From Pelomyxa schiedti (Eukaryota; Protista; Evosea), in NCBI GenBank assembly GCA_020536535.1, contig JAHLWZ010000505.1, positions 124,001 through 188,000 of the forward strand: 64,000 bases of DNA. The letters are read 5' to 3'. The position numbers and the translations under genes are program-made. The notes under the pieces were generated by a model, which was not told the origin of the DNA, did no database searches, and saw only the letters and a program-made list of their open reading frames with translations. Numbering within the stretch: position 1 is the stretch's first letter; every line of letters begins with the position of its first letter. This document shows positions 39,320 to 64,000 of this stretch, in pieces.

Positions 39320-42300
39320 ATGCAAACAGTCAGGCACTGTCACAGGCTGGAGTCGATGTCCGGCCTCTGTCCGACGATTTCACACCTCTTCTCGTCACAA
39401 ATAGAGAGTTCATGGACCCTTCGTACAACAACACTGTATGCGCTCTGACGAAGCTTCATCTTTCCGAAGCACAAACAAGGAATGATGATGAGTTGGGTCA
39501 GCAGTTGTCAGGTTCCCTTTCACTTGCCACATAATTTCACAAGCAAAATTAAAAAAAACCACACTCCACACAACGTGACGTGTTTGTTTAAAAGAACACA
39601 GAAATTGGGATGAGTGATGCTTCAGATTCGCTGTGTGGAGCACTGAATACACTGGAAAAGCCCTGCACGGTGGTGGCTCTGAGGGAGGTTCTTTCTATGC
39701 CTGAAATTCCACCTCCACTTTTGCGGGTTTTCAATTCCAAAAGAGGGTGGCTCCCAAAGCTTCGGCGGAGATTAGTTCCCATAATCGACCCCGGAGGAAC
39801 TCCGTCATCCAGAATAGAGTGGCTTAGCACCAGAGGACTATGACACACTAACTTCGACACTGAAAGTTTCGAAGGGTATCGCCATCAAAGTTTTGAAACA
39901 AGCAAAGGTCCTCATTGGAGACAGCAATATAATACAACCCTACCACTGTCAAAGAGGCACAGAATGGAAATACAGTGCACAAAGTCGTACTTGCCACAGA
40001 AGGTTACTACTCTTATCAATCTGATTTACAGTGGCAGCTGTTCACCCAGCGGTGACAGCATTGCCTTTGATGGATTGAGACCGAACCGCTCCAACCAACA
40101 GGGTTTGGAACGTGGCTGAAAACACTCATTTCACTCGTTCCCATTCAAATTGCACGTGGTGACAAAAACTGTTTGGTGTTGTGCAACAACAATTTATCTT
40201 CACAGGGAAATGATACGATTCAGTTCGCACAAACCCAACACAGTGTTGCAGAGGGAATTTCGTTTGGACTCCTTGACGCTATTTTCTCATCATGTTTCAA
40301 CAAACCAGTTCTTGTTGTCACATCGATGGGAAAACAGAGCACAGGGAAGAGTTACACTCTCAACCACCTCTTGGGTGTTCTCTTTGACATCTCTGGTGGG
40401 AGGTGCACTGATGGTTGTTGGATGAGTGTTCGTGAGAGGTCCGACTTCTTGATTGTGGCTTTGGATTTTGAGGGACTTTGTGCAGAGGGTGTTGGAATGT
40501 TGAAAGGGGATGACAAACTCTTCAAGGGTTGTTTCACTCTCATGGTAAAAGACGTTCCTGACAGGGATGTTGAAAGCTTAGTCTCGGATTTCAAGTCCAA
40601 GTTTGAGGAAATCGTGAAAACCAACCAGGGACAGAGCTTTCTTTCTCAAATGTTTACAGGGACCCTCCAAATAATCCTGTGTTCTCCACCTGGGACTGAT
40701 CACTACACAAAGAGCCTAACAAGCTGTGCCGACATTCTAGAGCAACAGACACCACAGTTCCACAGTGGAAGAGAATTCTCCTCCAAGCTCAAACTGATTC
40801 TCGCGAAGTTGCACTTGAAGGATTGGTCTTCCCTCTTGGGACAAGACATGGTGATTATGGTTCGAATGCTTCAAGAACAACTCCCTTTGGCCGTGAATTA
40901 TGGTGGTGCGTCAGCCATGAGCCACCACAGGGGACAACTTGTGAATTTGTCAACTGGGGCAGTTGTTCCCTGGCAAGAGTCGGTCACCATCTCCGGCTTC
41001 GACCTTCCCATTCCAAACTTGGCTCTCCTGGCAGCTCATTACCAGGCAGATTACGTAACGACACTCCGGGACGAGTTCAAGTCTTGTTTTGAGAAATACT
41101 TTCCAACCCCAAACCAGTCTGAATTCGTTTCATGGCGTGACCAGTTCAGGGAATTTGTGCACCAAGTAATTGAGAGCCGGAAGAAGCATGTGAATGATTG
41201 GGTCCGTTCAAACATGGAAGCATCATGTGAAACACCCCATGAACCTGCCACTGCACCTGTTCCACCCCAGAACGGGTGCCCTGTTGCCAAGGAATTTTTG
41301 AAGAAAGTTGAGTGTTCATTGCTACAACTGGATGCACTTGAAGTTTGTGTAGGCACTTGTGCTGAGTGCAACTTACCGTGCTTACTTCTACATGCGCACT
41401 CAGGGCGTCACAACTGCAACGGGTCACAAGTGTGAAGGTGAGTGCACTTATTGCAGGTGCGCAGATACATGCCCTGCGGGGAAGTGTGCCTATAAGGCTG
41501 GCCATGATGGCGCTCACGATTGTGCAAGGGGACATGCATCATGCAACAAGGACTGCTCCCTCTCGAGCAAAACAGGATGCAACAGATTATGCTACCTTGT
41601 GGCCAATCACAGCGGTCCATGCATGTGCAATTCACAGAAGCACCAGTGCCTCCTCCCGCAGTCATGTTTTCGATGATTGTCACAGGGAAGTGTGCACATC
41701 TTGCGGCAGGGTTCTTTTGACCCCCGAGCATCACACAGGCAAACTTTTGATTACGAGAGGTGCACTGTGCCGAAGCCAAGAAGCTCACTTGTTGTCAAAT
41801 GGTTCCAGCAGGGCAACAAGAGCACGTAGGTACTCACAGTTGCGACACAAGGGCTCATTGCTGCCAACAGTTGTGCCCAACCTGTGGTTATATTTGTGAA
41901 CTTGCATTTGGGCACTCTAATGAGCATCAAGCAAAGCACGGGAACATGATCAAAACACACTTTGTTTCCAGTGGCAAAAACATTGACCTTGATGGGCGTT
42001 TGTATGAAGCTGGTGAAACAGGGGCTGCAGAGTCCTGCAGTTCATTCTGCAACAAACTCGGCAGGCACATTCACATTCTACCCTGTGAAACACAAGGCAG
42101 CAGCACCTGTGCTCCCGCAGATAAAGGAGGCAGAAGGCACGCCAATGTGAAGTACCTGCTGGATCCAGAAAATCCCAAGGACGAGCTCACACACGAAGGG
42201 TATTGGCATGCGATTGGCTTCTGCGATCCATGCTCAGCTGAGCACGGGGAGATTTTCAAATTGTGCAACTTCGAGTGCGGTGAAAATCACATGGATGAGG

Positions 42301-43246
42301 GAAGGTGCAAGTGTATGCTTCCTCTTTGGCATGCACATTGTGGCTTACAAGTGAATGAGGAAAAAAAATTTGAAAGCAAAAACCCAAATAGCGGATATGC
42401 ATCATCTGATGGACACATATTCATCAGGAAGCATGGACCCCCAGAAAACATTCACATCGTTTTCTGCCTTGACGCATCCACATCCATGTCAAAACGCAAC
42501 CGGTGGCAAACTCTTGTGAGAGGTGTTGAACAGTTCATTTCTGCCAGAAACAGACAAGGGGATATTTACAGTGTTGTCTTGTTCTCCGGTGAGGGAAATG
42601 TTATCTGTGACATGAAGTCGCCTGGCAATGCACGGGCTACAATTGCCGACTTGCCCAAATTTGGGCGAGACACAAAATTTTCAAGTGGTCTGTCAGTTGC
42701 ATATCGTCAGCTAATGAAGACGAGATGGTGTGGTTTGTTCTCTTTTACCATTGCTCACCAAAAACAAAAAGGGATGAGTACCGGGCTGCTCTCATATTTA
42801 TGTCAGACGGAGAGGATGAGAACTCAGAATGGGAAAGCAGTATGCTGAACATCAAGCAGCTTGCAGAGCAAAAACCGCATGCACTTTTAACTTTCGTGAT
42901 TGGAATCGGCGATGGCTTCAACACCAAAAAGCTTCAAAGTGTTGCCACAGTTGGGAACACCCTGTTCCTCACAGTTGACGCCGTGTGTGCAAATCTGGGA
43001 ACAGTGTTGCAGAGGGTCGACTCCAACGTCAACCAACTAGTTGCTTTGATGAAACAGCCAGCACACACGGAGGCCACATCTGCATCAACATCCACATCCA
43101 CATCCACATCCACAAGCTCATCCTCATCCACATCCACATCCTCCTCCTCATCCGCATCCACATCCTCCTCTTCCTCGTCCTCATACACATCCCGATCCTT
43201 GTTCTCGTGCACATCCACATCCTCATCTGATGGTGGCGCCTCATGA
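39320..43246 (+). pseudogene. Giant VLIG/GBP-like GTPase-Cys-rich-vWA gene, copy 1 (pseudogene)
   Basis: Homologous to copies 2-4, but exon 1 is frameshifted after MQTV, there is a stop at 39843, a ~2.4-kb deletion at 40070/40071, a 43-codon deletion just after DFEGLC, and frameshifts in the Cys-rich region. Confidence 0.88.
43077..43225 (+). repeat. (A/G/T)CATCC-type hexamer microsatellite encoding the Ser/Thr tail of copy 1
   Basis: acatccacatccacatcc...tcctcatccgcatccacatcc; a shorter version sits at about 51286-51350 in copy 2. Confidence 0.8.
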
Positions 43247-44649
43247 CACGATGTGCTGAGGGTTAAGGTTGTGACCCACCACACTGTGAGGTGTGCTGGT
43301 TGTTGTTCTACTTGTGTAAGCGAATAAGAAGCCAAATACAAAGTACAAGAGTTTATTGTTCATTTCTTGGATAGCTACAATAGTGTTGTGCCAGCTTGAA
43401 AGGCACCGGTTCGGTAAGATTAGATTTAGATGATTTTTTCCCCACTAATAATAAACTCGTTGAGACGGTCGGTTTTGCATTTAGTGGTGCTGTGGACTCT
43501 AGGGGAGGAGCAGCGGTCCACATCTTTCCACAAATTAACTTGAAAGGACTGTGTCATTAATCAATTAACACTAATAGAATTCCTGGCAGTGACATGCTAG
43601 ACGCCAAAAATAGTTCAGCAGGGAATAGAATGTGGGTGAAGAGTGATTGTGGGATCAACAAACAAGCTCTCAAGTGCAACCACCTAGAATGCTTCAAAAA
43701 ATGAACGGTGAAATGGGGAAAAAAAGATAATAAACAGAGCTTTGGGGAGATATCATCAGATAGGTTGGGTAAGAAGTTGGCACTTAGGAATACTTATCTG
43801 AGATTCTACAGGAGGGGCACCAAAAGCCTGAGAGTCTTATTCTATTATATATATATATGTTATGATCTGAGAAAATAACATACAAATACATGTTCTTCCT
43901 CAGAGTGAAGAACTCTTGAGGTTCAGGTTACTCAGTGTCAGCGGATTTCTGGAAGGAGTTAGAAGTACAAATCGAAGGCTGGGGATAAAATACCATTGTA
44001 TTGGACGAGACATTCCATTCAAGTGGATTCCCTGAGCTAGTAGTGAGATTCAGTACCAAGGTGGACAAGGTGACATTGAGTGGATAATATGATGGCTGCC
44101 TTCGTTTTTCTGCTCAGTGCTTTGGCAAAGAGGGTGGAATAACTTATGTAAATTGGGTCACTACAAACATTATATAGTTAATCAATGGGAAAAGGTCTTT
44201 GTTTTTTTCCAACCCTTTATCAGAAGCAATCAAATCACAAGACATATGTTGCATCTGATCAATTGCTTTTGGTTCTCCTGTCCCATGGGAACAATAAGAA
44301 CGTGACACATTATGTTTGTGTAAATGAGCAAACCCATCATCAGAAGTGACTTGCATTTTCAGAGAGGGAAAGGTAATACCAAGGCCATTTAACTCAACAA
44401 TTGGTTACCTCAGAGTGGTGGGTTCAGCCTCGTGGGAATGGCTCCGCGATTCTACCAACTTGACCTTTGAGAGTGTAATAAAAATAATCATTGTTATACT
44501 CGGCAACCGTGATTCGGCACTCTTTGTAGGTGACAGGTACGGCATCAACCCACCCAGTAGCGGCCGCTGTATCCGTGTAATCTGTTGATTATTGCATTCA
44601 CAAGTTGGGAACCCGACAACTGCATTTGGTTGAAAAGTGAGAGGAAAAA

Positions 44650-47600
44650 ATGCAAACAGTCCGAGCGGCACTGTCGCGAGCGATGATTGATGTCAAACCA
44701 CTTGAGGAACTGGACTTCGACTTGGATGTGGCTCCGTCTGACGAATTCATCTCGCAACTAGCTGACAATCGCGAGTTGATGGATGCGTCGTACTACAAGA
44801 ATGTCTTCGAAGCGGTAGTGAGTTTCCGTGCCGAAGCAGGAAAGGAAGATGATCAGTTGAGTCCGAAGTTGTCAGGTTCTTTTCACTTGTGAAAACATAT
44901 TTAACACACGACAACCACTCGGGTGGTTTTTTTTTACTGCTGAAATGACACAGAAATTGAGATGAGTGGTGCCTCAGATTCGTTGTGCCGAGCATTGAAG
45001 ACAATGGGGAAGCCCTGTACGGTGCCAGCCCTGCGGGAACTTCTGTCCATGCCTGAAATTCCACCTCCACTTTTGCAGGTTTTCAATTCCAAAAGAGGGT
45101 GGCTCCCAAAGCTTCGGCGGAGATTGGTCCCAAGGATCGACCCCGGAGGAACTCCGTCATCCAGAATAGATTCATTTCCAGGGAGGCTAACCGAGGCAGG
45201 ATTCCAGGATTTGGAAGACCTCGTTGGTTTGGATTCTGGTGACTTTCAAAGACTCACAGCATCACTGAAAATTCCAAAGGGAAGTGCATACAAAGTACTG
45301 CAGCAAGCAAAGGCCCTTGTTGGAGAGGGAAAAAAAGTGCTGTACCACACACTGGAAAATGCATCTGGACTCTACAGCTTGATCACCACCGTCAAAGAGG
45401 CACACAATGGAAACACAGTGAACAAGGTAACTCTTGTCACACAGAAGGTTGTGAATCTGATCAATATGATTCGTCGTGGCAGCTGTTCACCCAGCGGTGA
45501 CAGCATTGCCTTTGACAAACTTGGAAGTTTCGACTTTGTCACCATCGGGCTTTTTGGTGACCTCACTTTGATCACCAACTTCCTGGTGCGAATTGGCGCT
45601 TTTCCTAAAGGTCCGAAACTGCTTGCGAATAATGGTCAGGCAGAGATACACACCTTCATCACCCAGTTTGCAGAAGGATCTGAAATGAGAGGAAAGTCAG
45701 TGATGATTCTTGTCTTTGTTCCAGGGAGCACAAGCTTTTCCAACGTTCAGGAGTCTGATCCTGCGTGCCTCTTCTTGCGGTTTCTTTACAGTCTCTGTGA
45801 CAGGATTTTCATGTGCTTGTCTGAGCCAATGCTCGCTGAACTCCAAAACGAAACAGGAGAAGCTGAAACAACAAGGGTTGTTAAATGTGAAGTCGAGAAG
45901 AGGGCAATCAAAAAAGACAGGTGTGAGTTCCGGAAAGGCTTTGCCCAGAACCTCAGCCTCCCATCGTCAGATTCACCTTGGACAATGATCCAGGGGGATA
46001 ACAGGGTTGGTTTTGTCTGTTGTGAGGAAGTTGACGAGAGACTTGTGTATAACCCAAGCAAAGGACAGATTCCAGCTCTTTATTTTACGTCACAGTTCAA
46101 AAATTTGTTGGATAGGAGGGAGTTGTGCACTGACACACTCCCTTATCTCAACAAGTTAGCACTTCTTAGGTTGTTGAATCCCACTGCTGCCCAATCAGTT
46201 GAAGATGGAAACAAGGGGCCAATCAAGACTCTTCAGAGGGTTGCTAAAGATCAAATGAAACTGATGCTCATGGAACACTTCAAGCATGAGTGGGAACTGT
46301 TGCAGCTTGAAGCACCTCATTCACCGCGCAACTATTGTACTGCTTTGGACCAAACGAGGCTGAGAACTATTGTTGAGGCATGGCTTTCCAAAACAACCTC
46401 AGTCGTTTTTCTCTTTGAGGAGTTTTGCCCTGATAAAACCGAAAGTCAACTCCGCGATTTCTTGAGTCTCACAGAACAGGAAATGAAGCAGAGAATCATG
46501 CAATTTGCAAGTGACCCACCAAGACCCCACGTGACACTTGCCACTCTTTCGTACTTTGTGTTCGAACCACACTTCATCTCAGAAATCACTTCCATGTTGG
46601 AAAAGAAATTTATGTCTCAGTGCAAATCGCTCGTCAAAGAAATGCAAGCTGCTGTGTGCAACAACCCTGATGCATTTTGCATTGGGTCACCATTTTCTTT
46701 GGAGCTGGACACCGCAATCCGCAAAGAAACTCCACACACAAACCCTGAAAAAGTGATGCTGACTATGTTCCAACAGTCGACTGACAAGGCAAACCCACTG
46801 GTGAGTTTCCATTTTCAGATGGCTGGTAAAGTTCCACGACACTTGAAGTCCACAGTTGTGGAAATAAGTTTGGAGAAGAAGGCAACTGATGGGTGTTCCA
46901 ATGTCACTCTCGCACCTCCTTTTTGTTTTGATTTGGACGTGGTCACCGTTCTTGGCTCTTTCCTGTTATCTGGAAGCAAGGTGATGGTTATCGGTGTTGA
47001 TGCTGCCAACCCTTCAAATTACCTCATCTGCATCCACCATGAGGGCATATGCTCCCTCAGTTCGAAACTGCCAAAGAAAGGTGGCATTTCACAAGTCAAC
47101 TTTTGTGCAACAACGAGAATTCTGGTGATGTGTTACTCCTCACCCGATTCCAGTGTCTGTGCTCTGAAGTTCAATGACGCATATTCGAAATTTGACAACC
47201 TGGGCAGTTTCCCGCTTGACAACGATGCCGCTCTTGCGAGTGTGAAGGGAATTTTCCCAGTTCCAGAAGGACAAAAGGTTGTGGTCACATTCCCAACAGT
47301 GGCCAAGCTCTTTGACTTCGAGAACAGAACTATATCAGAGTTGCCACAACTTGATGGTCCTGCACTTTTCCTCGGTCCAGAGTTCTTCGTCACTGTGAAA
47401 CCGTCACTTCCCGTCACTTCAGGAACACTTGGTGATGAGGGGGGATCGTGCGTTGTTTCTGTGAGGAGTTGCCTGCAACCCTGCAAAGTTCAGAACTGGG
47501 AAACAAACCTCCTGAACTCACACCTGTTGCCCTCAACACTTCTGGCAAATTTTCGTGTTGGTGGTGCACAAGAATTGCATTTGGTTCAATTCAACCCCAC

Positions 47601-50600
47601 CACTGGTCACGTTTCCTCTGTTGTTTTGTTTGCTGTGATGAAACAGACAAAGTTCACACTTCAGATGGCCTCACAAACAACTCGTCCATCACGGTCGCTC
47701 TTGGAATACCTGCATCTCACCTTTGACAAGTTCCCAATCACAGCCTTTTGTGGTGTTGCAATGGAAGAGAAACCACACAAGTTGACGGTTGTGGTGCCAT
47801 CAGCAACACCTGAAACAAAGAGACTGATCTCCAAGCGTCTGGGGGAATACAAAGAGAAGATTGCTGGTCTTTTCAAAACACTTGGCACAGCTGACAAGTT
47901 CTTCACTGAACATGTGACTTGCAGCATTGATCAAGGATGGATTGAGACCGAACCGCTCCAACCAACAGGGTTTGGAACGTGGCTGAAAACACTCATTTCA
48001 CTCGTTCCTGTTCAAATTGCTCGTGTTGACAACAACTGTTTGGTGTTGTGCAACAACAATTTATCTTCACAGGGAAATGATACGATTCAGTTCGCACAAA
48101 CCCAACACAGTGTTGCAGAGGGAATTTCGTTTGGACTCCTCGACGCGATTTTCTCATCATGTTTGAGCAAACCAGTTCTTGTTGTCACATCGATGGGAAA
48201 ACAGAGCACAGGGAAGAGTTACACTCTCAACCACCTCTTGGGTGTTCTCTTTGACATCTCTGGTGGGAGGTGCACTGATGGTTGTTGGATGAGCGTTCGC
48301 GAGAAATCTGACCACTTGATCGTGGCCTTGGATTTTGAAGGACTTTGCTCTCTGGAACGTTCTGAGCAGGAAGATATTCTCCTTTCTCTGTTGAATGCAT
48401 CTGTTTCAAATTTGACACTTTTCAAGACTGAATTCAGGATTGATCGGGAAACAGAAAGAATGTTCAGGAACTTCCAAGAGGGTGTTGGAATGTTGAAAGG
48501 GGATGACAAACTCTTCAAGGGTTGTTTCACCCTCATGGTAAAAGATGTACCTGGGAGGGACATTGACAGTTTATTTTCAGAATTCGAGTCCAAGTTTTCT
48601 AGAATTGTGGAAACCAACCAGGGGCAAAACTTTCTTTCTCAAATGTTTCCAGGGAAGTTCACAATGATTATGTGTTCCCCACTCGGAACCCCTAAATATA
48701 ACGATAGCTTGAAGTGCTGTGCCAAAAGACTGCGGAAGCAGACACCACAGTTCCGAAGTGGAGGAGAGTTCTCCTCGATGCTCAAACTGATTCTTGCGAA
48801 GTTACACTTGAAAGACTGGTCTTCTCTCTTGGGACAAGACATGGTGATTATGGTTCGAAATCTTGAAGAGGATCTCAGTTTGGCTGTATCTTGCGGGAGC
48901 AAGTCAGCAGCCACAGGTCACCAGGGACAACTTGTGAATTTGTCAACTGGGGAAGTCGTTACCCGCCTCGAATCAGTCACAATCTCCGGTCTCAGTATTC
49001 TCATTCCGAACTTCAATTTACAGGCAGATCACGAGGCAGATTTCACCAGGATACAGGACGAGTTCAAGTGTTGCTTTGAGAGATATCTCCCAAAACCACT
49101 GAAGCAGAGCGATTTCAGAAAGTGGCACAGCCAATTCAGTGATTTTGTGCACCAGGTCATTGAGAGCAGGAAGAGGCATGTGAAAGATTGGGTATATTCA
49201 AATATGAATAGGTGTCCTAGTTTCTGCACTGCAACCAATCCTGGCTCTGTCCCCTTTCGGAACGAATGCCCTGAAGTCAAAGTATTTTTGATGATAGTGG
49301 AGTCTTCGTTGCGAGGACTGGATGCACTCGAGGTTTGTTCAGACACATGCGCTCGGTGTCGGTTTCCGTGTTTACTTCTGTCTCGGCATTCAGGACAACA
49401 CAACTGCAATGGATCTCACAAGTGTGAAGCAGAGTGCACTTATTGCAAGTCCGCGGGCACGTGCGCCTACCAGGCCGGCCACGACGGCGATCACGACTGC
49501 ACAAGAGGCCACAAATGCAACCAGGGCTGCACTCTCTCGTGCAAAACAGGTTGCAACAGATTCTGCTCTCGTGTTGTCAATCATGAAGGTCCGTGCATGT
49601 GCAATTCGCAGCAACACCTGTGTGGTGACAAATGCTCTGCTCGAGGGTCATCAGAACACTGTGACAAAATGTGTACACTTCCTTACGACCATCATCAAAA
49701 TCATTTCTGTGGGAGGAGGCACTGCCTGCACAGTTGCAGCTTCCCAAAGTGCACAAATCAATGTGCATCTACAGATCATTTTCATGGGAACGAGGCTTCG
49801 GCTTCAGCCTTCCCACACTTATGTGGCTCTGAGCACGACTGTCAATCAGAGTGCGAGTTACCTGGCTGGTGCATTGTTGGATACTTTCAGAAGGTGGAAA
49901 AAGTTTCATACAATGGGCACAGGCAAAATTTTGTTTATGAGAGGTCCACCGTTCCAGAACCAAGAAAGCTCCCTTGCTGCAAAAGGGTGCCACCAGGGCA
50001 GCAAGTCCACGAGGGCTCTCACTCTTGCACTTATCCACAATCTGACCATCGTTGCAAACACTCGTGCCCAACCTGTGGTTATATTTGTGAACTTGAGTTT
50101 GGACACCAGGAGCAGCATGCAGCGGCACACGGAAACATGATCAAAACACAATTTGTTTCCAGTGGCAAAGACATTGACCTTGATGGTCGTTTGTATGAAG
50201 CCGGTGAACCAGGCGCGGCGGAGCTCTGCAACTTGTTCTGCAACAAACTTGGCAGGCACATTCACATCCTCCCGTGCACAGCGGAGGGCAATGAGCCCTG
50301 TTCTCACACTGGAGAAGGAGGCATAAGGCACGCCACAACAAAGTACCTGCCGGATCCGGATAATCCAAAGGACGAGCTCACACATGAAGGTTACTGGAAT
50401 GCAATTGGTTTCTGTGACCCTTGCACGCCTGAACACAGGGAGATTTTCAAATTGTGCAACTTTGAGTGTGGCGAAAATCGCCACACTGATCCCCGGTGTC
50501 GTTGCATGCTCCCTCTTTGGCATGAACCTTGTACCTTACAAGCCAATGAATCCGAAACTCTCAAAGACGGAAGGGTTGGTTTTGCGTCATCCGATGGACA

Positions 50601-51480
50601 CATATTCCCCAAAAAGCATGGACCCCCAGAAAACATGCACATCGTTTTATGCCTTGACGCATCCACATCCATGTTGAGACGCAACCGGTGGGAAACTCTT
50701 GTGAGAGGTGTTGAACAGTTCATTTCTGCCAGAAACAAACCAAAGGATGTTTACAGCATTATTCTGTTCCACGGTCAGGGAATTATTGCCTGTGACAGGG
50801 TATCACCTGAGCAAGCCCAGACCAGAATCACCATGGAACCTCATTTTGGGGGAGACACCAAGTTTTCAAGTGGTCTGTCATTTGCCTATCGTCAACTCAT
50901 GGAAACCGACTGGTGAGTCCTTTTTACCTTACTTTTGGCATGTTTTTCACCAAAAACAAAAAGGGATGAGTACCGGGCTGCTCTCATATTTATGTCGGAT
51001 GGAGAGGATGAGAACTCAGAATGGGAAAGCAGCATGCTGAACATCAAGCAGCTTGCAGAGCAAAGACCGCATGCGGTTTCAACTTTCGTGGTTGGAATCG
51101 GCAATGGCTTCAACACCAAAAAGCTTCAAAGTGTTGCCACAACCGGGGAGGCACAGTTTCTCACAGTCGACGCCGTGTGTGCAAATCTGACAGCAGTGTT
51201 AAAAGGCATAGATGCCAAGGCACAGCTAGTGGCTTTGATGCCCCCATTGATCCACACCACTGCACAACAGCCCAGTGTACAGGCACCCACATCCACGTCC
51301 ACGTCCACGTCCGCATCCGCATCCGCATTCCAATTTGCATCAGCATCCATTTTCCCATCCAGTTCCACTGGCACCTCTGGCTCCATTTCAAGAACCAAAT
51401 ACACATCCACACGCTCATCCACACCCACGTCGCCTCTGGTTCATGACTTCACAACGAGGAAGAACGGTGGCACCTCCTGA
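44650..51480 (+). CDS. Giant VLIG/GBP-like GTPase with SAM-like, Cys/His-rich and vWA modules, copy 2 (~2233 aa)
   Basis: Predicted join(44650..44875,44954..50912,50964..51480), in frame. G1 MGKQSTGKS, G2 GGRCTDG, G3 LDFEGL; SAM-like LTEAGFQDLEDLVGL; about 450 aa of C/H-rich repeats; vWA LDASTSM..DTKFSSG..FMSDG. Confidence 0.9.
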
Positions 51481-51813: not shown

Positions 51814-54800
51814 ATGCAAACGGTCCGGGAGGCACTCTTGCGGGCGAAGATCGATGTCAAACCACTCGAAGATCTGCACTTCGATTTGGATGTGCCTCTC
51901 TCTCACGATTTCGTCAGGCAACTTGCTGAAAATTGCGAGGACATGGACGCTCCGTACTACAAAACCGTCAGCGACGAGGTTGTGCGTTTTCTTTCCGAGA
52001 AACGAAATGACGATGACCAGTTGAGGGATACGTTGAGAGGTTCCTTTCACGTTCTTTTAAAAATTTGACACGTGAAGCTAGTGTGTTTAACACAAATGAG
52101 AAATAGAAATTGGGATGGATGGTGCCTCAGATTCGTTGAGTGGAGCATTGGAGACTCTGGGAAAACCCTGCACGGTGGCAGTCCTGAGGGAGGTTCTTTC
52201 TCTGCCTGAAATTCCACCTCCACTTGCGCATGTTTTCAATTCCAAAAGAGGGTGGCTTCCGAAGCTTCGGCGGAGATTGGTTCCAATGATCGACCCCGGA
52301 GGAACTCCATCATCCACTGTCGATTCATTTCCAGGGAAGCTGACCGAGGCAGGATTCCAGGATTTGGAAGACCTCGTTGGTTTGGATTCTGGTGACTTTC
52401 AAAGACTCACAGAGTCACTGAAAATTCCAAGGGGGAGTGCAAACAAACTGTTGCAGCAATCAAAGGCCCTCGTTGGAGATGGAAAAAAAGTGTTGTACCA
52501 CACATTGAAAACTGCCTCTGTATTCAATGGCCTGATCACCACTGCACAAGAGGCACAGAACGGAAACACAGCGAACAAGGTAACTCTTGTCTCAGAGAAG
52601 GTTCTGAATCTGATCAACATGATTCGCCGTGGTTGCTGTTCACCCAGCGGTGACAGCATTGCCTTTGACAAACTTGATGAAGGTTTTGTCACCATTGGGC
52701 TTTTTGGTGACTTGAGAGTGGTAATTGACTTCCTGGTGCGAATTGGTGCTCTTCCCGAAGGCAAGAAACTCCCTGAGAACAATGGTCAGGCAGAGATACA
52801 TGCCCTCACAACGCAATTTTCAGAAGAATCTGAAATGAGAGGCAAGCCAGTGATGATCCTCGTGTTTGTTCCAGGGAGCACAAGCTTTTCCAACGTTCAG
52901 GAGTCTGATCCTGCATGCCTCTTCTTGCGGTTTCTTTACAGTCTCTGTGACAAAATTTTCATGTGCTTGTCTGAGCCAATGCTCGCTGAACTCCAAAACG
53001 AAACAGGAGAAGCTGAAACAACAAGGGTTGTTGAATGTGAAGTCGAGACGCCATCAATACAAGATAGGTGTGAGTTCGAGAAAGGGTTTGCTCAGAACCT
53101 CAGCCTCCCATCGTCAGATTCGCCTTGGAAAATGATCCAATGTGATAACAGTGTTAGTTTTGTCTGTTGTGAGGAAATCAATGAGAGCACGCTTGTTTCC
53201 CCTATTAGAGGCCAGATCCCTGCCTATTACTTCGCGCCCCATTTCAAGGATTTATTGCACGGTAAGGAACTGTGCACTGACGCTCTATGTTATGCCAAGA
53301 AGTTGGCACTCCTTCGATTGCTAAATCCCACTGCAGCCCAATCAGTTGAAGATGGAAACAAGGGCCCACTCAAGACTCTTCAGAAGGTTGTAAAACTGAT
53401 GGTAGTGCAACACTTCCAGCACGAATGGGAGCTCTTGAACCTTAAAGCACCTCATTCACCGAGCGGTAGTCGCGTTGTCCTGGACCAAACGAGGCTGAGA
53501 AATACTGTCGAAACATACCTTTCACAGACAACCTCAGTCGTTTTTCTCTTTGAGGAGTTTTGCCCCGTTAAAACCGAAAGTCAACTCCGCGATTTCTTGA
53601 GTCTCACAGAACACGAAATGAAACAAAGAATCACTTCATCTGGGAGTGAGGCACCAAGACCCCACATTCCACTTTCCACTCTTTCATCCTTAGGGTTTGA
53701 GCCACACTTTGTCTCTGAAATCACTTCCCTGTTGAAAAGGAAATTTATGTCTCAGTTTGAAGCACTCATCAAAGAAATACAAGCTGCTGTGTGCAACAAC
53801 CCTGATGAATTCTGTGGTGGAACATCATTTTCTTTGGAGCTGGACACTGCAATCCGCAAAGAAACTCCACACACAACACCTGAAAAAATGACCCTGACAG
53901 TGTTCCAGCAGTCGACTGACAAGGCAAACCCACATGTTAGTTTTGATTGTCAGATGGCTGTAAAATTGCCGCGGCACATGAAGTTCACAGTTGTGGAATC
54001 AAATATGGAGAAAACTGCTGGATTTTCCAATGTCACCCTTGCACCTCCTTTTTGTTTTGATGTGGACGTGGTCACCGTTCTTGGTTGTTTCCTGTTGCCT
54101 GGAAGCAAGGTGATGGTTGTTGGTGTTGACGCCGAAGACCCTTCAAATTACCTCATCTGCATCCATCACGAAGGCACACGCTTCCTCAGTTCGAAACTGC
54201 GAAAGAAAGGTGGCATTTCACAAGTCAACTTTTGTGCAACAACGAGAATTCTGGTGATGTGTTACTCCTCACCCGATTCCAGTGTCTGTGCTCTGAAGTT
54301 CAACGACTCATATTCGAAATATGACAACCTGGGCAGTTTCCCGCTTGACAACGATGCCGCTCTTGCGAGTGTGAAGGGAATTTTCCCAGTTCCAGAAGGG
54401 CAAAAGGTTGTTGTGACATTCCCAACAGTGGCCAAGCTCTTTGACTTCGAGAACAGAACTATATCAGAGTTGCCACAACTTGATGGTCCTGCACTTTTCC
54501 TCGGTCCTGAGTTCTTTCTCACTGTGAAACCGTCACTCCCCGTTGTTTCCGGCACGGTTTGTGAGAGGGAATCGTGCCATGTTTCTGTGAGAAGCTGCCA
54601 CAATCCCTCAATTGTTCAGAACTGGGAAACAAATCTTCTGGACTCTTGCCTGTTGCCCTCAACACTTCTGGTAAATTTTCGTGTTGGTGAAGGGGCACAA
54701 GAGCCTCATTTGATCCAATTCAATCCCACATCAGGTGAGATCTCCTCGGTGATCTTGTGTGCTGTGATGAAACACACAAAATTCTCACTTCAGATGGTGG

Positions 54801-57800
54801 CACCAGTGAGTCGGCCTTCATGTTCACCATTGAAATACTTGTTGGATGCCTCGAGTAAGTTTCCAATCACAGCCGTTTGTGATGTTGCACGGGAGGAGAA
54901 ACCACACAAATTGACTGTTGTGGTGCCATCAGCAACACCCGAAGCCAAGAGACTTGTATCCAAGCGGCTCCAGGAATACAAAGACAAACTTGTCCGTCTT
55001 TGCAAAACCCTTGGCACAGCTGACAAGTTCTTCACTGAGCATGTGACTTGCAGCATTGATCAAGGATGGTTTGAGATCGAACCGCTCCGATCCGTTGAGT
55101 TTGGAACGTGGCTGAAAACACTCATTTCACTCGTTCCCATCCAAATCGCCCGCGTCGACAACAACTGCTTGGTGTTGTGCAACACTGCATCTTCACAGGG
55201 AAAGACTGTGCGCGACAGCACTTCCCAACAAAATCTTGTAAATTTTACCCAAACCCAACACAGTGTTGCAGAGGGGATTTCGTTTGGACTCCTCGACGCG
55301 ATTTTCTCATCATGTTTCAACAAACCAGTTCTTGTTGTCACATCGATGGGAAAACAGAGCACAGGGAAGAGTTACACTCTCAACCACCTCTTGGGTGTTC
55401 TCTTTGACATCTCTGGTGGGAGGTGCACTGATGGTTGTTGGATGAGTGTTCGCGAGTATTCTGATTGCTTGATCGTGGCTTTGGATTTTGAGGGCCTTTG
55501 CTCACCAGAGCGTTCTGAGCAGGAAGACATTCTGCTTTCTCTGTTGAATGCATCTGTTTCCAACCTGACTCTTTTCAAGCTAGAATTTAGGATTGATAGG
55601 GAGACAGAAAAAATGTTCAGGAACTTCCAAGAGGGTGTTGGAATGTTGAAAGGGGATGACAAACTCTTCAAGGGTTGTTTCACTCTCATGGCAAAAGATG
55701 TTTCTGAAAGAGACATTGAAAGTTTATCTTCAGAATTCAACATCAAGTTTAAGAACATTGTGGAAACTAACCAGGGGCAAAACTTCCTTTCTCAAATGTT
55801 TCCAGGGAAGTTCACAATGATTATGTGTTCCCCACTCGGAACCACTGGATATAACGATAGCCTGATCAGCTGTGCCGAAATTCTACGGAAGCAGACACCA
55901 CAGTTCCGAAGTGGAGGAGAGTTCTCCTCGATGCTTAAGCTGATTTTAGCGAAGTTACACTTGAAAGACTGGTCTTCCCTCCAGGGACAAGACAGGGTGA
56001 TTATGGTTCGAATGCTCCAGGAACAGCTCCCATGGGCTGTCTCTTGTGGCAGCAAGTCAATATCCAGTGGCCATGAGGGACAACTTGTGAATTTGTCAAC
56101 TGGGGAGGTCGTTCCCCGCCCAGAATCGGTCACCATCTCTGGTGTCGGCATTCCCATTCCGAACTTCAATCTGCAAGCAGACCGTGAGGCAGATTTCACC
56201 AGGATAAGAGATGAGCTCAAGTGTCGTTTTGAGAATTATCTTTCAAAACCACTGAAGCAGAGTGATTTCAGGCCATGGCACAGCCAATTCAGTGATTTTG
56301 TGCACCAGGTCATTGAGAGCAGGAAGAGGCATGTGAAAGATTGGGTCTGTTCAAACACGAACAGGTCGCCTGCTTCTGTTCCTCCTCAGGACGAATGCCC
56401 TGAAGTCCAAGCATTTTTGGCTACAGTGGAGTTTTCGTTGCGAGGACTGGATTCACTCGAGGTTTGTTCAGACACGTGCACTTGGTGTCGGTTTCCGTGT
56501 TTACTTCTGTCTCGGCATTCAGGACAACACAACTGCAATGGATCTCACAAATGTGAAGCTGAGTGCACTTATTGCAAGTCCGCGGGCACGTGCGCCTATC
56601 CGGCAGGTCACGATGGTGATCACAACTGTGCAAGAGGTCACAAATGCAACCAGGGCTGCACTCTCTCGCGCAAAACAGGTTGCAATAGATTCTGCTCCCT
56701 TGTTGTAAATCACTCCGGCCCATGCATGTGCAATTCGCAGCAACACCTGTGTGGTGAAAAATGTTCCGCTTGTGGACCAGAAAGACCCTGTGGTGAGCCG
56801 TGCGCACTCCCTTGTGAAGATCATCGAAAACACGACTGCGGGAGGAGGCGCTGCCTGCACAGTTGCAGTTTCCCAAAGTGCACAAATCCATGTGCATCTA
56901 CAGACCACTTTCACGGGACTGCCGTCTCGGTTTCAGTATATCCACACTTGTGTGATAAAGAGCACGACTGTCAATCAGAGTGCGAGGTGCCTGGTTGGTG
57001 CCGTGTAGAATACATTCAGAAGGTGGAGAATCTTTCATACAATGGGCACAGGCAAAGTTTTGTTTATGAGAGGTCAACTGTTCCAGAACCAAGAAAGCAC
57101 TCTTGCTGCAAAAGGGTGCCACCAGGGCGGCAAGTCCATGAGGGATCTCACTCTTGCACTTATCCACAATCTGACCATCGTTGCAAACACTCGTGCCCAA
57201 CCTGTGGTTATATTTGTGAACTCAATTTTGGGCACCCTGGCAAGCATGCAGCGGCACACGGAAACATGATCAAAACACAATTTGTTTCCAGTGGCAAAGA
57301 CATTGACCTTGATGGTCGTTTGTATGAAGCCGGTGAACCAGGCGTGGCGGAGATCTGCAACCTGTTCTGCAACAAACTTGGCAGGCACATTCACATCCTT
57401 CCGTGCACAGCGCAGGGTGATGGGCCCTGCGTTCACACAGGAGCAGAAGGTCGAAGGCACGCCACCGTAAGGTATCTTCCAGATTCAAATATTCCGAAGG
57501 ATGAGCTCACACACGAGAGCTACTGGAATTCAATTGGATTCCGCGATCCCTGCACGGCTGAACACAGGGAGATTTTCAAATTGTGCGACTTTGAGTGTGG
57601 CGAAAATCGTCACACTGATCCTCGGTGCAGGTGCATGCTCCCTCTTTGGCACGCACGTAGTTCCTTACAAGTCAATGAATCCAAACAGTTCGAATGTGGG
57701 AAATTTGGTTTTGCATCATCCGATGGACACATATTCCTCAGGAAGCATGGACCCCCAGAAAACATGCACATCGTTTTATGCCTTGACGCATCCACATCGA

Positions 57801-58500
57801 TGAATAGACGTAGCCGGTGGCAAACACTTGTGAGAGGTGTTGAACAGTTCATTTCTGCCAGAAACAAACCAAGGGACGTCTACAGCATTGTCCTGTTCCA
57901 CGGTCAGGGAATTGTTGCCTGTGACAGGGTGTCACCTGACCAGGCCCGGGCTAACATTACCAGGGAACCTCATTTTGGGGGAGACACCAAGTTTTCAAGT
58001 GGTCTGTCAGTTGCGTATCGAAAGCTCATGGAGACTGACTGGTGTGGTTTTGTTGACTTTCTTTTGGCATTGTTGTTCACCAAACAAAAAGGTCTGACTA
58101 CCGTGCTGCTCTTATATTTATGTCGGATGGCGAGGATGAGAACTCGGAATGGGAAAGCAGCATGCTGAATATCAGGCAGCTCGCACATCAAAGAACTCTT
58201 TCAACTTATGTGATTGGAATCGGTGATGGCTTCAACTCCAGAAAGCTGCGAAGCGTTGCCGAAACCGGGGGTGCTCAGTTCGTTGCAGTCGACGCTGTGT
58301 GCACAAATCTGGCAACGGCCCTGCAGACAATTGACTCCAGAGCAGGGCAACCAGTTGCTTTGATGAATCCATTGCTAAACCTGAATCCGCCTCCCACTGC
58401 ACAACTCCGTGTGCGGGAGGCCACCTCCACTCCCACTTCCTACCCCACTTCATGCTTCACAGATCTGAGAAATTCGACAAAGAAAGGTGGCACCTCGTGA
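51814..58500 (+). CDS. Giant VLIG/GBP-like GTPase-Cys-rich-vWA protein, copy 3 (~2189 aa)
   Basis: Predicted join(51814..52039,52107..58041,58092..58500), in frame; same motifs and intron positions as copy 2. Confidence 0.9.
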
Positions 58501-58942: not shown

Positions 58943-59830
58943 TCAAAAAGTCTTCTGAACTGAACATGGGAGGTACTCATGTTCATGTATTGGCTCAGTT
59001 GTTTCTAACAACATAAGCAAAAGGTAAAAAGAAGTTGAGTACATTTACCTAACGAAGAAATCTTCACCTTGTCCAGCTGTGTGTAGTCCCGGGACTCCTC
59101 AGGCTCTGTTTCCGGCTCCGGACATAACCTCCTTAGGATAGGTAAGAGACTAAAACACAGTAGGGGAACAAACTGGCCAAGGAACAAACTCATTGTCAGG
59201 CCCAGGATTGTAGTGCACATCGAAGATTATCTTTGCTTTTTGCAGCCAGTTGATTTCCACACTGTTGGCTAGCGTGGTACATGAGTAACACAAAAAAAAA
59301 AGAGTGATACCTGAGGCAGCTAAGCCTCCAACCCGTATCATTAGGGTGAAAAGATGCAGCAATAAAATTTGATATAAAATTTACTCGGCAGTTGTCTTCG
59401 TAAATCAATGCAGTAATCAGGGTGATGGTCAACCATCATACTGAAATGAAACTCGCACTTGCGCCAATTTTCCTCAACTGGCTGCTGATGTACAAAGTTT
59501 GTGAATACCTAGAGGGTTTAATAAAGCAAAAGAGGTGAGTGAAGAACACGCACATCACCCATTCTGTTTGTTTTTTTCACAAACTGAAAGCCCGCATGGT
59601 GGAGGTTACATAGCATTTTTGACAAAGGAAATATCTACCTTCACACCCGGTTTTCCTCTGCAAGGCACACCCTAGCAGAATACAAACCCTTGAATAGGAT
59701 ATTTGAAAGAGTCCCTGAAGCACGTTGGTAAGAATATAACTTATATAGAAACACATACATCGATAATACCGCTTCTGTGACAAGTTCCCGAACCCAAGGT
59801 GAAGGTCCCTCCATGGTCCCATTGGATATC
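58943..59830 (-). CDS. Possible small multi-exon hypothetical gene or gene remnant between copies 3 and 4
   Basis: Several typical GT-AG introns; three 3' introns splice in frame to ..NSVEINWLQKAKIIFDVHYNPGPDNERLCPEPE..QKTF-stop; the 5' part could not be resolved. Confidence 0.3.
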
Positions 59831-59934
59831 CATTCCCACGCGCGGCAAGTCCTGGAGCGTCAAAAAAGTGCTTTTTGTTCCGTTGCTCAAAATTGGTGGA
59901 ACATCAAAAACTTGCTTGGATAAAAGGGAAAAAA

Positions 59935-62900
59935 ATGCAAACAGTGAAAGAGGCACTGTCGCGAGCGGGGGTCGATGTCAAACCACTCGAAGATCTGCAC
60001 TTCGATTTGGATGTGGCTCTTTCCTGCAATTTCGTCTCTGTTCTCGCTGAAAATCGCGAGGACATGTAGCCTTCGTACTACAACATTGTCTACGACGCTG
60101 CAGTCCGTTGTCTTTCTGAAATAAAAGAAAACGACGATGACCAGTTGAGTGAGAAGTTGTCAGGTTCCTTTCAAGGATAACCGAAACACGATTGTTCTAA
60201 AATGAAACAGAAATTGGGATGAGTGGTGCCTCGGATTTGTTGAGCCGAGCATTGAGGACAATGGGAAAGCCCTGCACGGTGCCAGCCCTGCGGGAACTTC
60301 TGTCCATGCCTGATATTCCACCTCCACTTTTGGACACTTTAAATTCTAAAAAAGTAGGATGGCTCCCAAAACTTCGGCGCAGATTGGTTCCCATTATTGA
60401 CCCCGGAGGAACTCCATCATCCAGCATCGAGTCATTTCCAGGGAAGCTGACCGAGGCAGGATTCCAGGATTTGGAAGACCTCGTTGGTTTGGATTCTAGT
60501 GACTTTCGAACACTCACCGAGGCACTGAGAATTCCAAGGGTATCTGCGAACAAACTGCTGCAGAAAGCCAAGGACCTCGTTGGAAGCGGAAAAAAACCGC
60601 TGTGCCTCACACTGGAACACGCAACTGGGATCCACAGCTTGATCACCACCGTCAAAGAGGCACACAATGGAAACACAGTGAACAAGGTCACCCTTGTCAC
60701 ACAGAAGGTTGTGACTCTGATCAACCTGATTTGTAAGGGCAGCTGTTCACCCAGTGGTGACAGCATTGCCTTTGACAAACTCGATGACTGTTTTGACTTT
60801 GTCACCATTGGGTTTTTTGGTGACCTCGCATTGATCACCAATTTCCTGGTGCGAATTGGTGCTTTTCCTGAAGGCAAGAAACTCCCTGAGAGCAATGGTC
60901 AGGCAGAGATACACACCTTCATCACCCAGTTTGCAGAAGGATCTGAAATGAGAGGAAAGTCAGTGATGATTCTTGTCTTTGTTCCAGGGAGCACAAGCTT
61001 TTCCAACGTTCAGGAGTCTGATCCTGCGTGTCTCTCTCTGCGGCTTCTTTACAGTCTTTGTGACAGGATTTTCATGTGCTTGTCTGAGTCAATGCTCACT
61101 GAAATTCAACAAAGAAGAGGAGAAGCTGAAACACCAAGGGTTGTTAAATGTGAAGTCGAGAAGAGGGCAATCAAAAAAGATAGGTGCGATTTCCAGAAAG
61201 GCTTTGCCCAGAACCTCAGCCTCCCATCGTCAGATTCACCTTGGATAATGATCCGAGGAGAAGACAGGGTTGCCTTTGTCTGTTGGGAGAAAACCAATGA
61301 TAGTACATTGCCCTCCCCACTCAGAGGACAGATACCAGCGTATTGCTTTTCATCGCCGTTCAAGGATTTGTTGGGTGGGAGGGAGCTGTGCACTGGCACC
61401 CTCCCTTATCGCGACAAGTTGGCACTCCTTCGGTTGTTGAATCCCACTGCCACTCAATCAGTTGAAGATGGAAACAAGGGTCCAATCAATAATCTTCAGA
61501 GGGTTGCAAAGGAACAAATGAAATTGATACTAATGAGATACTTCAAGCACGAGTGGGGACTGTTGCAGCTTGAAGCACCTTGTTCACCAAGCGGTCATTG
61601 TGCTGATCTGGACCCATCCAGGCTGAGAGATATCATCAATGCATGCCTTTCAAAGACAACGTCTGTTGTTTTTCTCTTTGAGGAGTTTTGCCCCAAAAAA
61701 ACCCAAAGTCAAATCAGTGATTTCTTGAGTCTCACAGAACATGAAATGAAGCAGAGGGTCATTCAATTTACGAGTGATCATCCACCAAGGCCCCACGTTC
61801 CACTTTCTTCTGTTTCATCGTTGGGGTTTGAGCCACACTTCATTTCTGAAATCACTTCCATGTTGAAAAAGAAGTTCATATATCAGTGTGAAGCACTCAT
61901 CAAAGAAATTGAAGATGAGGTGTGCAGCAACCCTGATGAATTTTGCAGTGGGTCACCATTTTCTTTGGAGCTGGAAACCGCAATTCGCAAAGAAACTCCA
62001 CACACAAAGCCGGAAAAAGTGACCCTGACAATGTTAGAAGTGGGTGACAAAGCAAACCCACAAGTCACCATTACCATGGAGATGTCTGGAAAAGTTCCAC
62101 AACACATGAAGTTCACAGTTGTGGAACTGCGTTTGAAGACAACTGATGGGCGTTCCAATTTCACTCTCGCACCTCCTTTTTGTTTTGATTTGGACTTGGC
62201 GGCTGTTATTGGTTGTTTTCTCTTGCCGGAAGGCAAAGCGATGGTTGTTGGTGTTGACACTGCCAACCCTTCAAATTATCTCATCTGTATCCACCACGAG
62301 GGCACACGCTTCCTCAGTTCGAAACTGCCAAAGAAAGGTTGCATTTCCCATGTCAACTTTTGTGCAATAACGAGAATTCTGGTGATGTGTTACTCCTTGC
62401 CCGAGTCCAGTGTCTGTGCTTTGAAATTCAACGGCTCGTATTCGAAATATGAGAACCTGGGCAATCTCTCAATTGCTGATGATGCCGATCTTGCGGGTGT
62501 GAATGGAATTTTCCCAGTTCCAGAAGGGCAAAAGGTTGTTGTGACATTCCCAACAGTGGCCAAGCTCTTTGACTTTGAGCACAGAACCATTTCCAAGCTG
62601 CCACAATTTGATGGTCCTGCATTTTTCCTCGGTCCAGAGTTCTTCGTCACTGTGAAACCATCACATGAGAGGGAGTCGTGTGTTGTTTCTGTGAAAAGTT
62701 GCCTGCAACCCTCCAAAGACCAGAACTGGGAAACAAACCTCCTGAACCCACACCTGTTGCCATCAACACTTCTTACAAATTTTCAGGTTGATGGTGGGGA
62801 TGGGGCACCAGAATTACAGCTGGTACAGTTCAACCCCACCTCCCGTCACGTTTCCACAGTGGTCTTGTGTGCTGCAATGAAGCAAGCAAAGTTCTCTCTG

Positions 62901-64000
62901 CAGATGACCTCACAACCAAGTTGCCCTTCCTGCCTGCCCGATTACCTGCCTCTTATGTTAAGCAAGTTCCCAATCACAGCTGTTTGTGATATTGCATCGG
63001 AAGCGAAAACACACAAGTTGACAGTCATTGTCCCATCAGCAACACCCGAGGCAAAGAGACTGATCTCCCAGCGTCTGGGGGAATACAAAGAGAAGCTTGT
63101 CGGTCTTTTCAAAACACTTGGCACAGCTGACAAGTTCTTCACGGAACCTGTGACTTGCAGCATTGATCAAGGATGGATTGAGACCGAACCGCTCCAACCA
63201 ACAGGGTTTGGAACGTGGCTGAAAACACTCATTTCACTCGTTCCTGTTCAAATTGCTCGTGTTGACAACAACTGTTTGGTGTTGTGCAACAACAAGAGTT
63301 CTTCACAGGGAAATGATATGATTCAGTTCGCACAGACCCAGCACAGTGTTGCAGAAGGGATTTCATTTGGGCTCCTTGATGCCATTTTCTCATCATGTTT
63401 CAACAAACCAGTTCTTGTTGTCACATCGATGGGAAAACAGAGCACAGGGAAGAGTTACACTCTCAACCACCTCTTGGGTGTTCTCTTTGACATCTCTGGT
63501 GGGAGGTGCACTGATGGTTGTTGGATGAGTGTTCGCGAGTATTCTGATTACTTGATTGTGGCTTTGGATTTTGAGGGCCTTTGCTCGCCAGAGCGTTCTG
63601 AGCAGGAAGATATTCTCCTTTCTCTGTTGAACGCATCCGTTTCAAACATGACTCTTTTCAAGACTGAATTTACAATTGATCGGGAAACAGAAAGAATGTT
63701 CAGGAACTTCCAAGAGGGTGTTGGAATGTTGAAAGGGGATGACAAACTCTTCAAGGGTTGTTTCACTCTCATGGTGAAAGATGTTTCTGAAAGGGACATC
63801 GCAAGCTTAACCACAGAATTCAAGGAAAAGTTTAATAGCTTTGTGGAAACAAACCAGGGACAAAACTTCCTTTCTCAAATGTTTCCAGGAATGTTCACGA
63901 TGATTATGTGTTCCCCGCTTGGAACATCTGGCTATACTGAGAGTTTGCAGAACTGTGCCGAAATACTGCAGAAGCAAACACCACAGTTCCACAGTGGAGA
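59935..64000 (+). CDS. Giant VLIG/GBP-like GTPase gene, copy 4 (partial; exon 1 has an in-frame TAG, exon 2 is open from ATG 60219 to the window end)
   Basis: Manual translation from 60219 showed no stop up to 64000 and includes MGKQSTGKS, GGRCTDG and DFEGL; exon 1 (59935-60163) has TAG at 60067-60069. Confidence 0.85.

Follow-up and report, generated by a model that had tools for sequence, protein, structure and literature searches.

Giant GTPases of the GBP and VLIG type are interferon-induced antimicrobial machines of vertebrates. Human GVIN1, a giant GTPase inducible by interferon-gamma, is described as forming an antimicrobial coatomer around Burkholderia thailandensis, and AlphaFold3 models suggest that it dimerises via its large GTPase (LG) domains; the layout outlined in the preprint runs from an N-domain through an LG domain, a helical linker and a second LG domain to a C-domain (bioRxiv 10.1101/2025.03.24.645074). 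Here, we describe a tandem array of four giant GTPase genes (copies A to D) of the anaerobic amoeba Pelomyxa schiedti, located in a 64,000-nucleotide stretch of scaffold C505 (C505:124001-188000, hereafter the window, whose positions are used unless stated otherwise). The genes belong to a family, present in most eukaryotic supergroups, in which a GTPase of this kind is fused to a large, strictly conserved zinc module and to a vWA domain carrying a metal site. We place this family as an ancient branch of its own within the GBP/atlastin/Sey1/VLIG superfamily of large GTPases, and it is a sister branch of the vertebrate GBP/GVIN immune GTPases, not a member of that group.

The four units were delineated by tblastn with the 2,017-codon open reading frame (ORF) of copy C (52115-58168) and by blastn of the repeat unit, both against the window. 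They lie head-to-tail on the plus strand and start near 39365 (A), 44635 (B), 51799 (C) and 59921 (D). An earlier sequence-only reading had proposed an array of at least four giant paralogues of about 2,200 amino acids (aa), one dead, two intact and one with a damaged first exon, and both searches bear this out: copy A is a pseudogene, B and C are intact and D is damaged. As the units are only 73-84% identical in DNA (blastn of the repeat unit), we regard them as true paralogues rather than assembly duplicates. Assembly duplicates, which the same reading had named as a possible but unlikely refutation, and likewise separated haplotypes can be rejected on the grounds of this divergence, of synonymous distances (dS) of 0.24-0.55, of the unrelated flanks of a further copy on scaffold C974 and of the order of the copies on scaffold C900, which is not collinear.

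Domain architecture

The GTPase lies in the second half of the protein and is followed by a helical stalk (Table 1). Pfam recognizes only its P-loop-to-G3 part, for which URGCP_GTPase is the best family (38-45 bits), followed by RHD3_GTPase (22-28) and GBP (17-23). When compared with PDB, the family profile matches GBP5, GBP2, GBP1, Sey1 and vWA domains. An AlphaFold2 model of residues 1040-2140 of copy D, built on an alignment of 46 sequences, reached a predicted local distance difference test (pLDDT) score of 77.9, and its LG domain and stalk were matched by Foldseek to GBP5, GBP1, GBP2, RNF112, atlastin and Sey1, with E-values from 2.6e-11. Possessing an LG fold, a helical stalk and intact G1, switch I Thr, G3 and G4 elements, the protein falls at the fold level within the GBP/atlastin/Sey1 superfamily of large GTPases. 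The motifs G1 GKQSTGKS, switch I RCTxG, G3 DFEG and G4 [KR]-D show little or no variation across the 46 relatives, which likewise retain the DxSxS motif of the vWA metal ion-dependent adhesion site (MIDAS). Because both sets of residues are kept throughout this alignment, the GTPase is predicted to be catalytically competent, and the MIDAS should be functional.

Between the stalk and the vWA domain, the proteins carry a region of 445 residues with 48 Cys and 35 His. In as many as 70 alignment columns, at least 85% of the 46 relatives have a Cys or His, a number that would be enough for about 17 zinc sites. This part of the AlphaFold2 model is confident (pLDDT 80-90). It gave no match to any Pfam zinc-finger family at E-values up to 1 or to a PDB sequence, and no Pfam zinc-finger family is present in the precomputed domain lists of the relatives. 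The NFX1-type zinc finger was tried as a candidate and rejected: its pattern, C-x(1-6)-H-x-C-x3-C-[HC]-x(3,4)-[HC]-x(1,10)-C, has 0 matches, and Pfam zf-NF-X1 does not match either. Searches of the ESM Atlas with the zinc module and with residues 1-1000 returned no usable match.

As for the vWA domain, it scores above the Pfam cut-off on the spliced model of copy C (37.2 vs 23.8 bits), adopts the vWA fold and combines DxSxS with the downstream Thr and Asp. The Cys/His-rich stretch of about 450 aa, the vWA domain with an intact MIDAS and the Ser/Thr-rich (S/T-rich) tail, all of which had been proposed from the sequence, are borne out. A (CCACAT)n-type microsatellite codes for the tails of copies A (43074-43227) and B (51287-51318), and tail length varies between copies. 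All four copies keep a short motif of the GG[TA]S type, i.e., GGTS in B and C, GGAS in A and NGAS in D; it forms the C-terminus in A, B and C, and in D the stop codon that follows has been lost.

The N-terminal half was modelled for residues 1-1000 of copy C (pLDDT 72.9), with helices over residues 1-120 and an alpha/beta domain at 137-295. Fold searches of the two modelled halves were dominated by vWA, LG and propeller domains. In the predicted structure, the central part of the N-terminal half forms a beta-propeller of the WD40/Kelch/NHL-like type with 6-7 blades. The domain order of the sequence-only reading therefore stands together with its GTPase and MIDAS motifs; its 'beta-rich region' can now be named as a beta-propeller with a helical insert, and its 'SAM-like' call lacks statistical support. 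For the latter stretch, we obtained only weak matches (helix-hairpin-helix (HhH), Rad51 N-terminal domain, SAM of SHIP2 and EphA2, E-values 0.3-1.5; HHH_5 with an E-value of 0.06 in one copy). True SAM domains are found upstream of the same alpha/beta domain in the relatives P0079 and P0014.

A profile of residues 1-1000 compared with 1.84 billion representatives retrieved only 28 proteins. Outside Pelomyxa, the matches are confined to residues ~130-335, except for the sponge-type protein P0066, which aligns with residues 675-943. Residues 335-1000 of the Pelomyxa proteins thus have almost no detectable relatives outside the genus, and the alpha/beta domain is, apart from that P0066 match, the only N-terminal part common to relatives in other eukaryotes. 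Residues ~130-335 are shared by family members of Klebsormidium and Coleochaete and by others from metagenomes, and in these proteins the domain lies ~900-1,000 residues upstream of the active GTPase. One further match (P0073, residues 61-101), a bacterial PKD-repeat protein, was discarded as spurious. The alpha/beta domain gave no match in a profile search of PDB or in Pfam. It contains a strand-GxxG-helix element and its topology is compatible with that of an LG domain; hhalign against the active LG domain yielded a probability of 0.2.

Relationship to known large GTPases

Of the described systems, GVIN1, VLIG-1 and URGCP share their general plan with the Pelomyxa proteins, being giant soluble proteins with a large region preceding the active LG domain and belonging to tandem or expanded families, and URGCP_GTPase is the best Pfam family for the Pelomyxa G domain. 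Strict membership in the VLIG/URGCP family (PF25683) is nevertheless rejected, since 38-45 bits fall short of the cut-off of 55 and only positions ~186-298 of the 396 in the profile align. Of the earlier assignment of the G motifs to the VLIG/GBP clade, the large-GTPase fold and motifs are retained and the VLIG family membership is not. The Pelomyxa proteins carry a Cys/His zinc module, a vWA domain and a propeller, none of which is mentioned in the preprint's domain description of GVIN1 (bioRxiv 10.1101/2025.03.24.645074). Two LG domains are predicted in GVIN1 according to the same source, which makes a first, dead LG domain a reasonable idea for Pelomyxa as well; sequence support for it was sought in the N-terminal alpha/beta domain by hhalign against the protein's own LG domain, by a PDB profile search and in Pfam, and none was found. 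Bona fide URGCP/VLIG-type GTPase domains are encoded elsewhere in the P. schiedti genome, at C802:120741-121469 (176 bits), C769:14757-15353 (143 bits) and C454:3090-3569 (96 bits), one of them within an open frame of 2,275 codons. Pelomyxa hence has true VLIG-type giants besides the GTPase-zinc-vWA family.

We also considered typical GBPs (PF02263). Copy C reaches 17-20 bits and copy B 22.9 bits against a cut-off of 21.1, which is borderline, and the proteins end in ...GGTS without a CaaX box, so this assignment was rejected. Unlike GBP1, GBP2, GBP5 and RNF112, with which identity amounts to 13-18%, the Pelomyxa protein is four times longer and adds a propeller, a zinc module and a vWA domain. 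Membership in the Sey1/RHD3/atlastin group was rejected as well: RHD3_GTPase scores lie below the cut-off of 42.4 bits and the protein has no transmembrane-like segment, its most hydrophobic 19-mer falling in propeller strands. Canonical RHD3/Sey1 genes of the same genome are located on scaffolds C573 and C79. True members of the family are giant eukaryotic proteins annotated as 'VWFA domain-containing', which share the entire GTPase, stalk, Cys/His and vWA core and in some cases the N-terminal alpha/beta domain, yet differ from the Pelomyxa proteins in their N-terminal halves.

Distribution and naming of the family

We found the GTPase-stalk-zinc-vWA core, with 28-39% identity over about 860-1,000 residues, in oomycetes, in red, green and streptophyte algae, in a conifer, a liverwort, a dinoflagellate and a foraminifer, in Cyanophora-type and MMETSP entries, and among fungi in Serendipita, Clavulina, Endogone and chytrids. 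Examples include Phytophthora PITG_07840, Saprolegnia SPRG_10588, Galdieria Gasu2_62280, Klebsormidium KFL_006110080 and Serendipita FRC18_011419. This agrees with the statement, made before any database search, that fungi and further eukaryotes possess related giants with a vWA domain. No other amoebozoan was present among the matches to the family core. The N-termini of the relatives carry differing modules, among them RING, B-box, C2, SAM, AAA+/helicase, G-patch and TerD.

In UniProt, the relatives are named either 'VWFA domain-containing' or 'VLIG-type G domain-containing'. A literature search covering the family, VLIG-type terms and the accessions of relatives found nothing specific to the GTPase-zinc-vWA family, which is old, widespread in eukaryotes and uncharacterised. 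The Pelomyxa copies bear the NCBI product names 'E3 ubiquitin-protein ligase', 'E3 ubiquitin-protein ligase TRIP12' and 'Sterol 3-beta-glucosyltransferase', none of them with Pfam support, and these public names should be corrected. Moreover, the NCBI models P0002-P0004 omit by splicing residues ~1449-1710, a part of the Cys/His region.

Gene models and state of the copies

The genes consist of three exons, the first of which (~75 codons) is conserved in all copies and present in the NCBI models. Proteins encoded in the window show 95-100% identity to NCBI models of P. schiedti. Exons were searched separately, and the spliced product of copy C was examined as its NCBI model. The second intron, of ~50 nt and of the GT-AG type, interrupts the vWA domain (50 nt in copy C); copy B has introns of 78 and 51 nt, both GT-AG. 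Genes of P. schiedti contain on average 7.43 introns (PMC8887013). Compared with this mean, the two short introns of B and C in 6.6 kb are few, and the giant exon is unusual for the organism.

Copy A is dead, having suffered a 2.4 kb deletion that removed the equivalent of residues ~188-984, together with frameshifts in exon 1 and near 41427. In turn, exon 1 of copy D is interrupted by a premature TAG at 60067. Its exon 2, which begins at about 60211, is an open frame that leaves the window, extending to about 66,160 when window numbering is continued past the end. The ORF of D reads through the vWA intron because this intron happens to be in frame, and where B and C have a stop after ...GGTS, D has the sense codon GTA, i.e., the terminal stop is lost. 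The NCBI model of D (P0004) begins within exon 2 and is joined to the downstream gene for a 3'-5' exonuclease (PF01612; ~66156-67124 in continued numbering); the joining may be either a real fusion or an annotation artefact.

Table 1. Coordinates of the array copies and of the domains encoded by copy C (window positions)
Feature	Position	Strand	Details
Copy A, pseudogene	39365..43230	+	Detected by tblastn and blastn
Copy A, exon-1 remnant, frameshifted	39365-39522	+	
Copy A, exon-2 remnants	39610-42848	+	Without residues ~188-984 of copy C; further frameshifts
Copy B, intact	44650..51480	+	Exons 44650-44875, 44954-50912, 50964-51480; 2,233 aa
Copy C, intact	51814..58500	+	Exons 51814-52039, 52107-58041, 58092-58500; in frame; 2,189 aa; NCBI model P0001
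Copy C, SAM-like/HhH bundle of four short helices	52277..52489	+	Residues 55-125; assignment not significant
Copy C, alpha/beta domain	52502..53029	+	Residues ~130-305; matches no known family
Copy C, beta-propeller with helical insert	53036..54790	+	Propeller residues 308-369 and 591-892; insert 393-583
Copy C, large GTPase and helical stalk	55232..56464	+	Residues ~1040-1450; G1 GKQSTGKS, switch I RCTDG, G3 DFEG, G4 KD
Copy C, Cys/His-rich zinc module	56465..57769	+	Residues ~1451-1885
Copy C, vWA domain with MIDAS DxSxS, then S/T-rich tail	57770..58500	+	Split by intron 58042-58091
Copy D, damaged	59934..64000	+	Continues beyond the window to about 66,800 (window-extended numbering)

Birth-and-death and selection

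Genome-wide, we counted about 13 loci with the GTPase core, distributed over scaffolds C505 (4), C900 (5), C974 (1), C22 (2, only 42% identical) and C402 (1 fragment), and 5-6 of them are broken, including copy A and the C402 fragment. The C900 copies comprise one intact gene, one with a single late frameshift, one truncated and two with several frameshifts. The C402 locus (C402:3537-7231, minus strand) is a strongly degenerate, frameshifted remnant, with 64% identity to copy C in the GTPase core and 27-43% in the N-terminal part, and represents an old pseudogene outside any array.

In a maximum-likelihood tree of the core, copies from different scaffolds pair with each other: A with C900d (bootstrap 81), B with C900a (86) and D with the C974 copy (99). 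The flanks of the C974 copy show no homology to the C505 or C900 loci. The interleaved tree and the lack of flank homology imply that single genes duplicate and disperse and that the arrays are not homogenised. Tandem paralogues with pseudogenes among them and no homogenisation within arrays are the marks of birth-and-death evolution, as which the array had been interpreted before the other loci were known.

Ratios of nonsynonymous to synonymous substitution (omega) were estimated by the Nei-Gojobori method for the six copies with an open exon 2 (~1,900-2,300 codons), one of which, C900a, ends at the late frameshift. Pairwise omega amounts to 0.31-0.42 at the dS values given above. Among the domains, the LG domain is the most constrained (0.21, confidence interval 0.15-0.28), followed by the zinc module (0.32), the alpha/beta domain (0.36), the propeller (0.48) and the vWA domain (0.48). 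In 60-codon windows, omega drops to 0.08-0.16 from the P-loop to G4 and is 0.25-0.77 in other regions, with 0.7-0.77 in the first propeller blades, which agrees with the sequence-only reading of a nearly invariant GTPase core with diverging flanks. A 'rapidly evolving' recognition system, in turn, is not shown by these values: no domain reaches an omega of 1, and among the 30-codon windows a single one (residues 689-716) rises above it, with a value of 1.33 that is not significant. Constraint is uneven along the protein, and adaptive evolution is not demonstrated. From the preserved open frames, the invariance of catalytic and zinc ligands and an omega that stays well under 1 throughout the domains, we conclude that the intact copies are under purifying selection.

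We observed in addition that dS falls to 0.13 around the P-loop (55286-55465, residues 1058-1117 of copy C), compared with 0.72 in the codon window that follows and about 0.4 over the remainder. Local gene conversion or a constraint at the nucleotide level could account for this.

Possible role of the family in Pelomyxa

In several respects, the Pelomyxa copies behave like an immune gene family, forming tandem arrays, dispersed single-gene duplicates and many pseudogenes, and possessing a lineage-specific N-terminal half. Variability of architecture is listed as a criterion for biological conflict systems by Kaur et al. (2020; PMC7159879). Judged by the criteria of that work, the family combines N-terminal modules that vary around a retained core with an omega below 1 in all domains (0.21-0.48). 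Traits resembling those of conflict genes are the ~13 loci with 5-6 broken, the interleaved tree together with the lack of flank homology, an omega that is lowest in the GTPase and highest in the propeller and vWA domain, the lineage-specific N-terminal half and the core kept across supergroups. An immune role thus appears plausible by analogy, from the gene-family dynamics and from the variable architecture. The most likely setting would be cell-autonomous control of ingested or resident microbes, possibly including the amoeba's prokaryotic symbionts, and we put the probability of this at roughly 0.55. Several prokaryotic endosymbionts are known to live with P. schiedti (PMC10579272).

For such a role, the parts of the protein suggest the following division of labour. 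Upon GTP binding, the protein would pair or polymerise through its LG domain, as do GBP1 and Sey1 and as is predicted for GVIN1. The target would be chosen by the lineage-specific N-terminal half, especially by the propeller, and the rigid zinc module may serve as a spacer or platform between this half and the vWA domain. The vWA MIDAS, for its part, may capture a peptide of a partner or target protein, in line with the general mechanism reviewed in PMC7159879.

Several observations weigh against microbial control. The family is deeply conserved, with 30-39% identity from plants to oomycetes and with 70 Cys/His positions fixed; this is unusual in a protein shaped by an arms race alone and would also fit a conserved cellular role. 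The protein has no membrane anchor or lipidation motif by which a coat could be attached. No domain shows an omega above 1, the single higher window is not significant, and the overall omega pattern is as compatible with relaxed purifying selection as with diversifying selection. Finally, the genome (52.4 Mb in 5,337 scaffolds) was assembled from Nanopore reads of single-cell, whole-genome-amplified material, and some frameshifts could stem from errors of such an assembly (PMC8887013); the large deletions in family copies cannot be explained as errors of this kind.

Of the other explanations, the one that fares best is a chaperone or assembly factor driven by NTP, with a role in proteostasis or in the building of complexes instead of defence; its vWA domain would hold a client peptide for the GTPase to remodel, as in MoxR-vWA pairs and midasin. 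Peptide capture by a vWA domain with an NTPase driving the conformational change is a common mechanism (PMC7159879), and both the intact MIDAS DxSxS and the strong conservation of the core speak for it. We still consider it unlikely, given that the partner NTPase here is a dynamin-superfamily GTPase and not a MoxR AAA+ ATPase, and that turnover in copy number and swapping of N-terminal modules are not expected of a general assembly factor.

A low probability attaches to a decaying, largely neutral expansion, spread by unequal crossing-over, in which copies are being lost and none has a specific function. The 5-6 broken loci out of 13, the moderately high pairwise omega of 0.31-0.42 and the exon-1 nonsense codon and lost stop of copy D are what such a process would produce, but six copies keep exon-2 frames of ~1,900-2,300 codons at dS of 0.24-0.55, their catalytic and zinc ligands being invariant and omega being well below 1 in every domain. 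Very improbable is a housekeeping remodeller of membranes or organelles of the atlastin/Sey1/RHD3 kind, acting for example in ER fusion. Against it stand the missing transmembrane segment, the RHD3_GTPase scores of 22-28 vs 42.4 bits and the canonical RHD3/Sey1 loci on C573 and C79, and a single-copy essential role is at odds with 13 loci, 5-6 pseudogenes and the apparent absence from other Amoebozoa among the matches. The least probable is an E3 ubiquitin ligase with the Cys/His module as a RING-like catalytic unit, which would suit the NCBI names of several copies ('E3 ubiquitin-protein ligase (TRIP12)'), the N-terminal RING and B-box of some relatives and the presence of RNF112, a RING-bearing GBP-like GTPase, among the structural matches, except that Pfam at E-values up to 1 detects neither HECT, RING or U-box nor any further E3 family, whether in the spliced models or in single segments, the NFX1-type pattern has no match, and the glucosyltransferase name of another copy suggests automatic name transfer.

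Returning to cell-autonomous control of microbes, it may be extended to the family as a whole, although we regard this wider proposal as doubtful. In that case, the GTPase-polyzinc-vWA giants would be an ancestral, pan-eukaryotic branch of immune GTPases which predates and parallels vertebrate GBP/GVIN. In Pelomyxa, the propeller half would act as a diversifying recognition surface, and the zinc platform would link GTP-driven assembly on symbiont or pathogen compartments to the capture of peptides by the vWA MIDAS. The amoeba would then have a germline-encoded repertoire policing its obligate prokaryotic consortium. Should a role in defence or symbiont control be shown, the origin of GTPase-coat immunity would move closer to the early eukaryotes, and tractable models would be available in Phytophthora, Galdieria, Klebsormidium and chytrids. 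A new zinc fold and a new coupling of GTPase and vWA domains would be defined as well.

Neighbouring genes

The gene directly upstream of the array (32991-36698) contains a weak match to the Sec23/24 trunk domain, which is vWA-like, at 34594-35319, and is followed by a scaffold gap of 100 N (36816-36915). Two further features were noted on the minus strand of the gene-dense left part of the window, namely an exon for a C-terminal domain of glycosyl hydrolase family 3 (3059-3964) and a 336-codon ORF (9474-10484) full of pentapeptide repeats (E-value 4.9e-40), a type common in bacteria.

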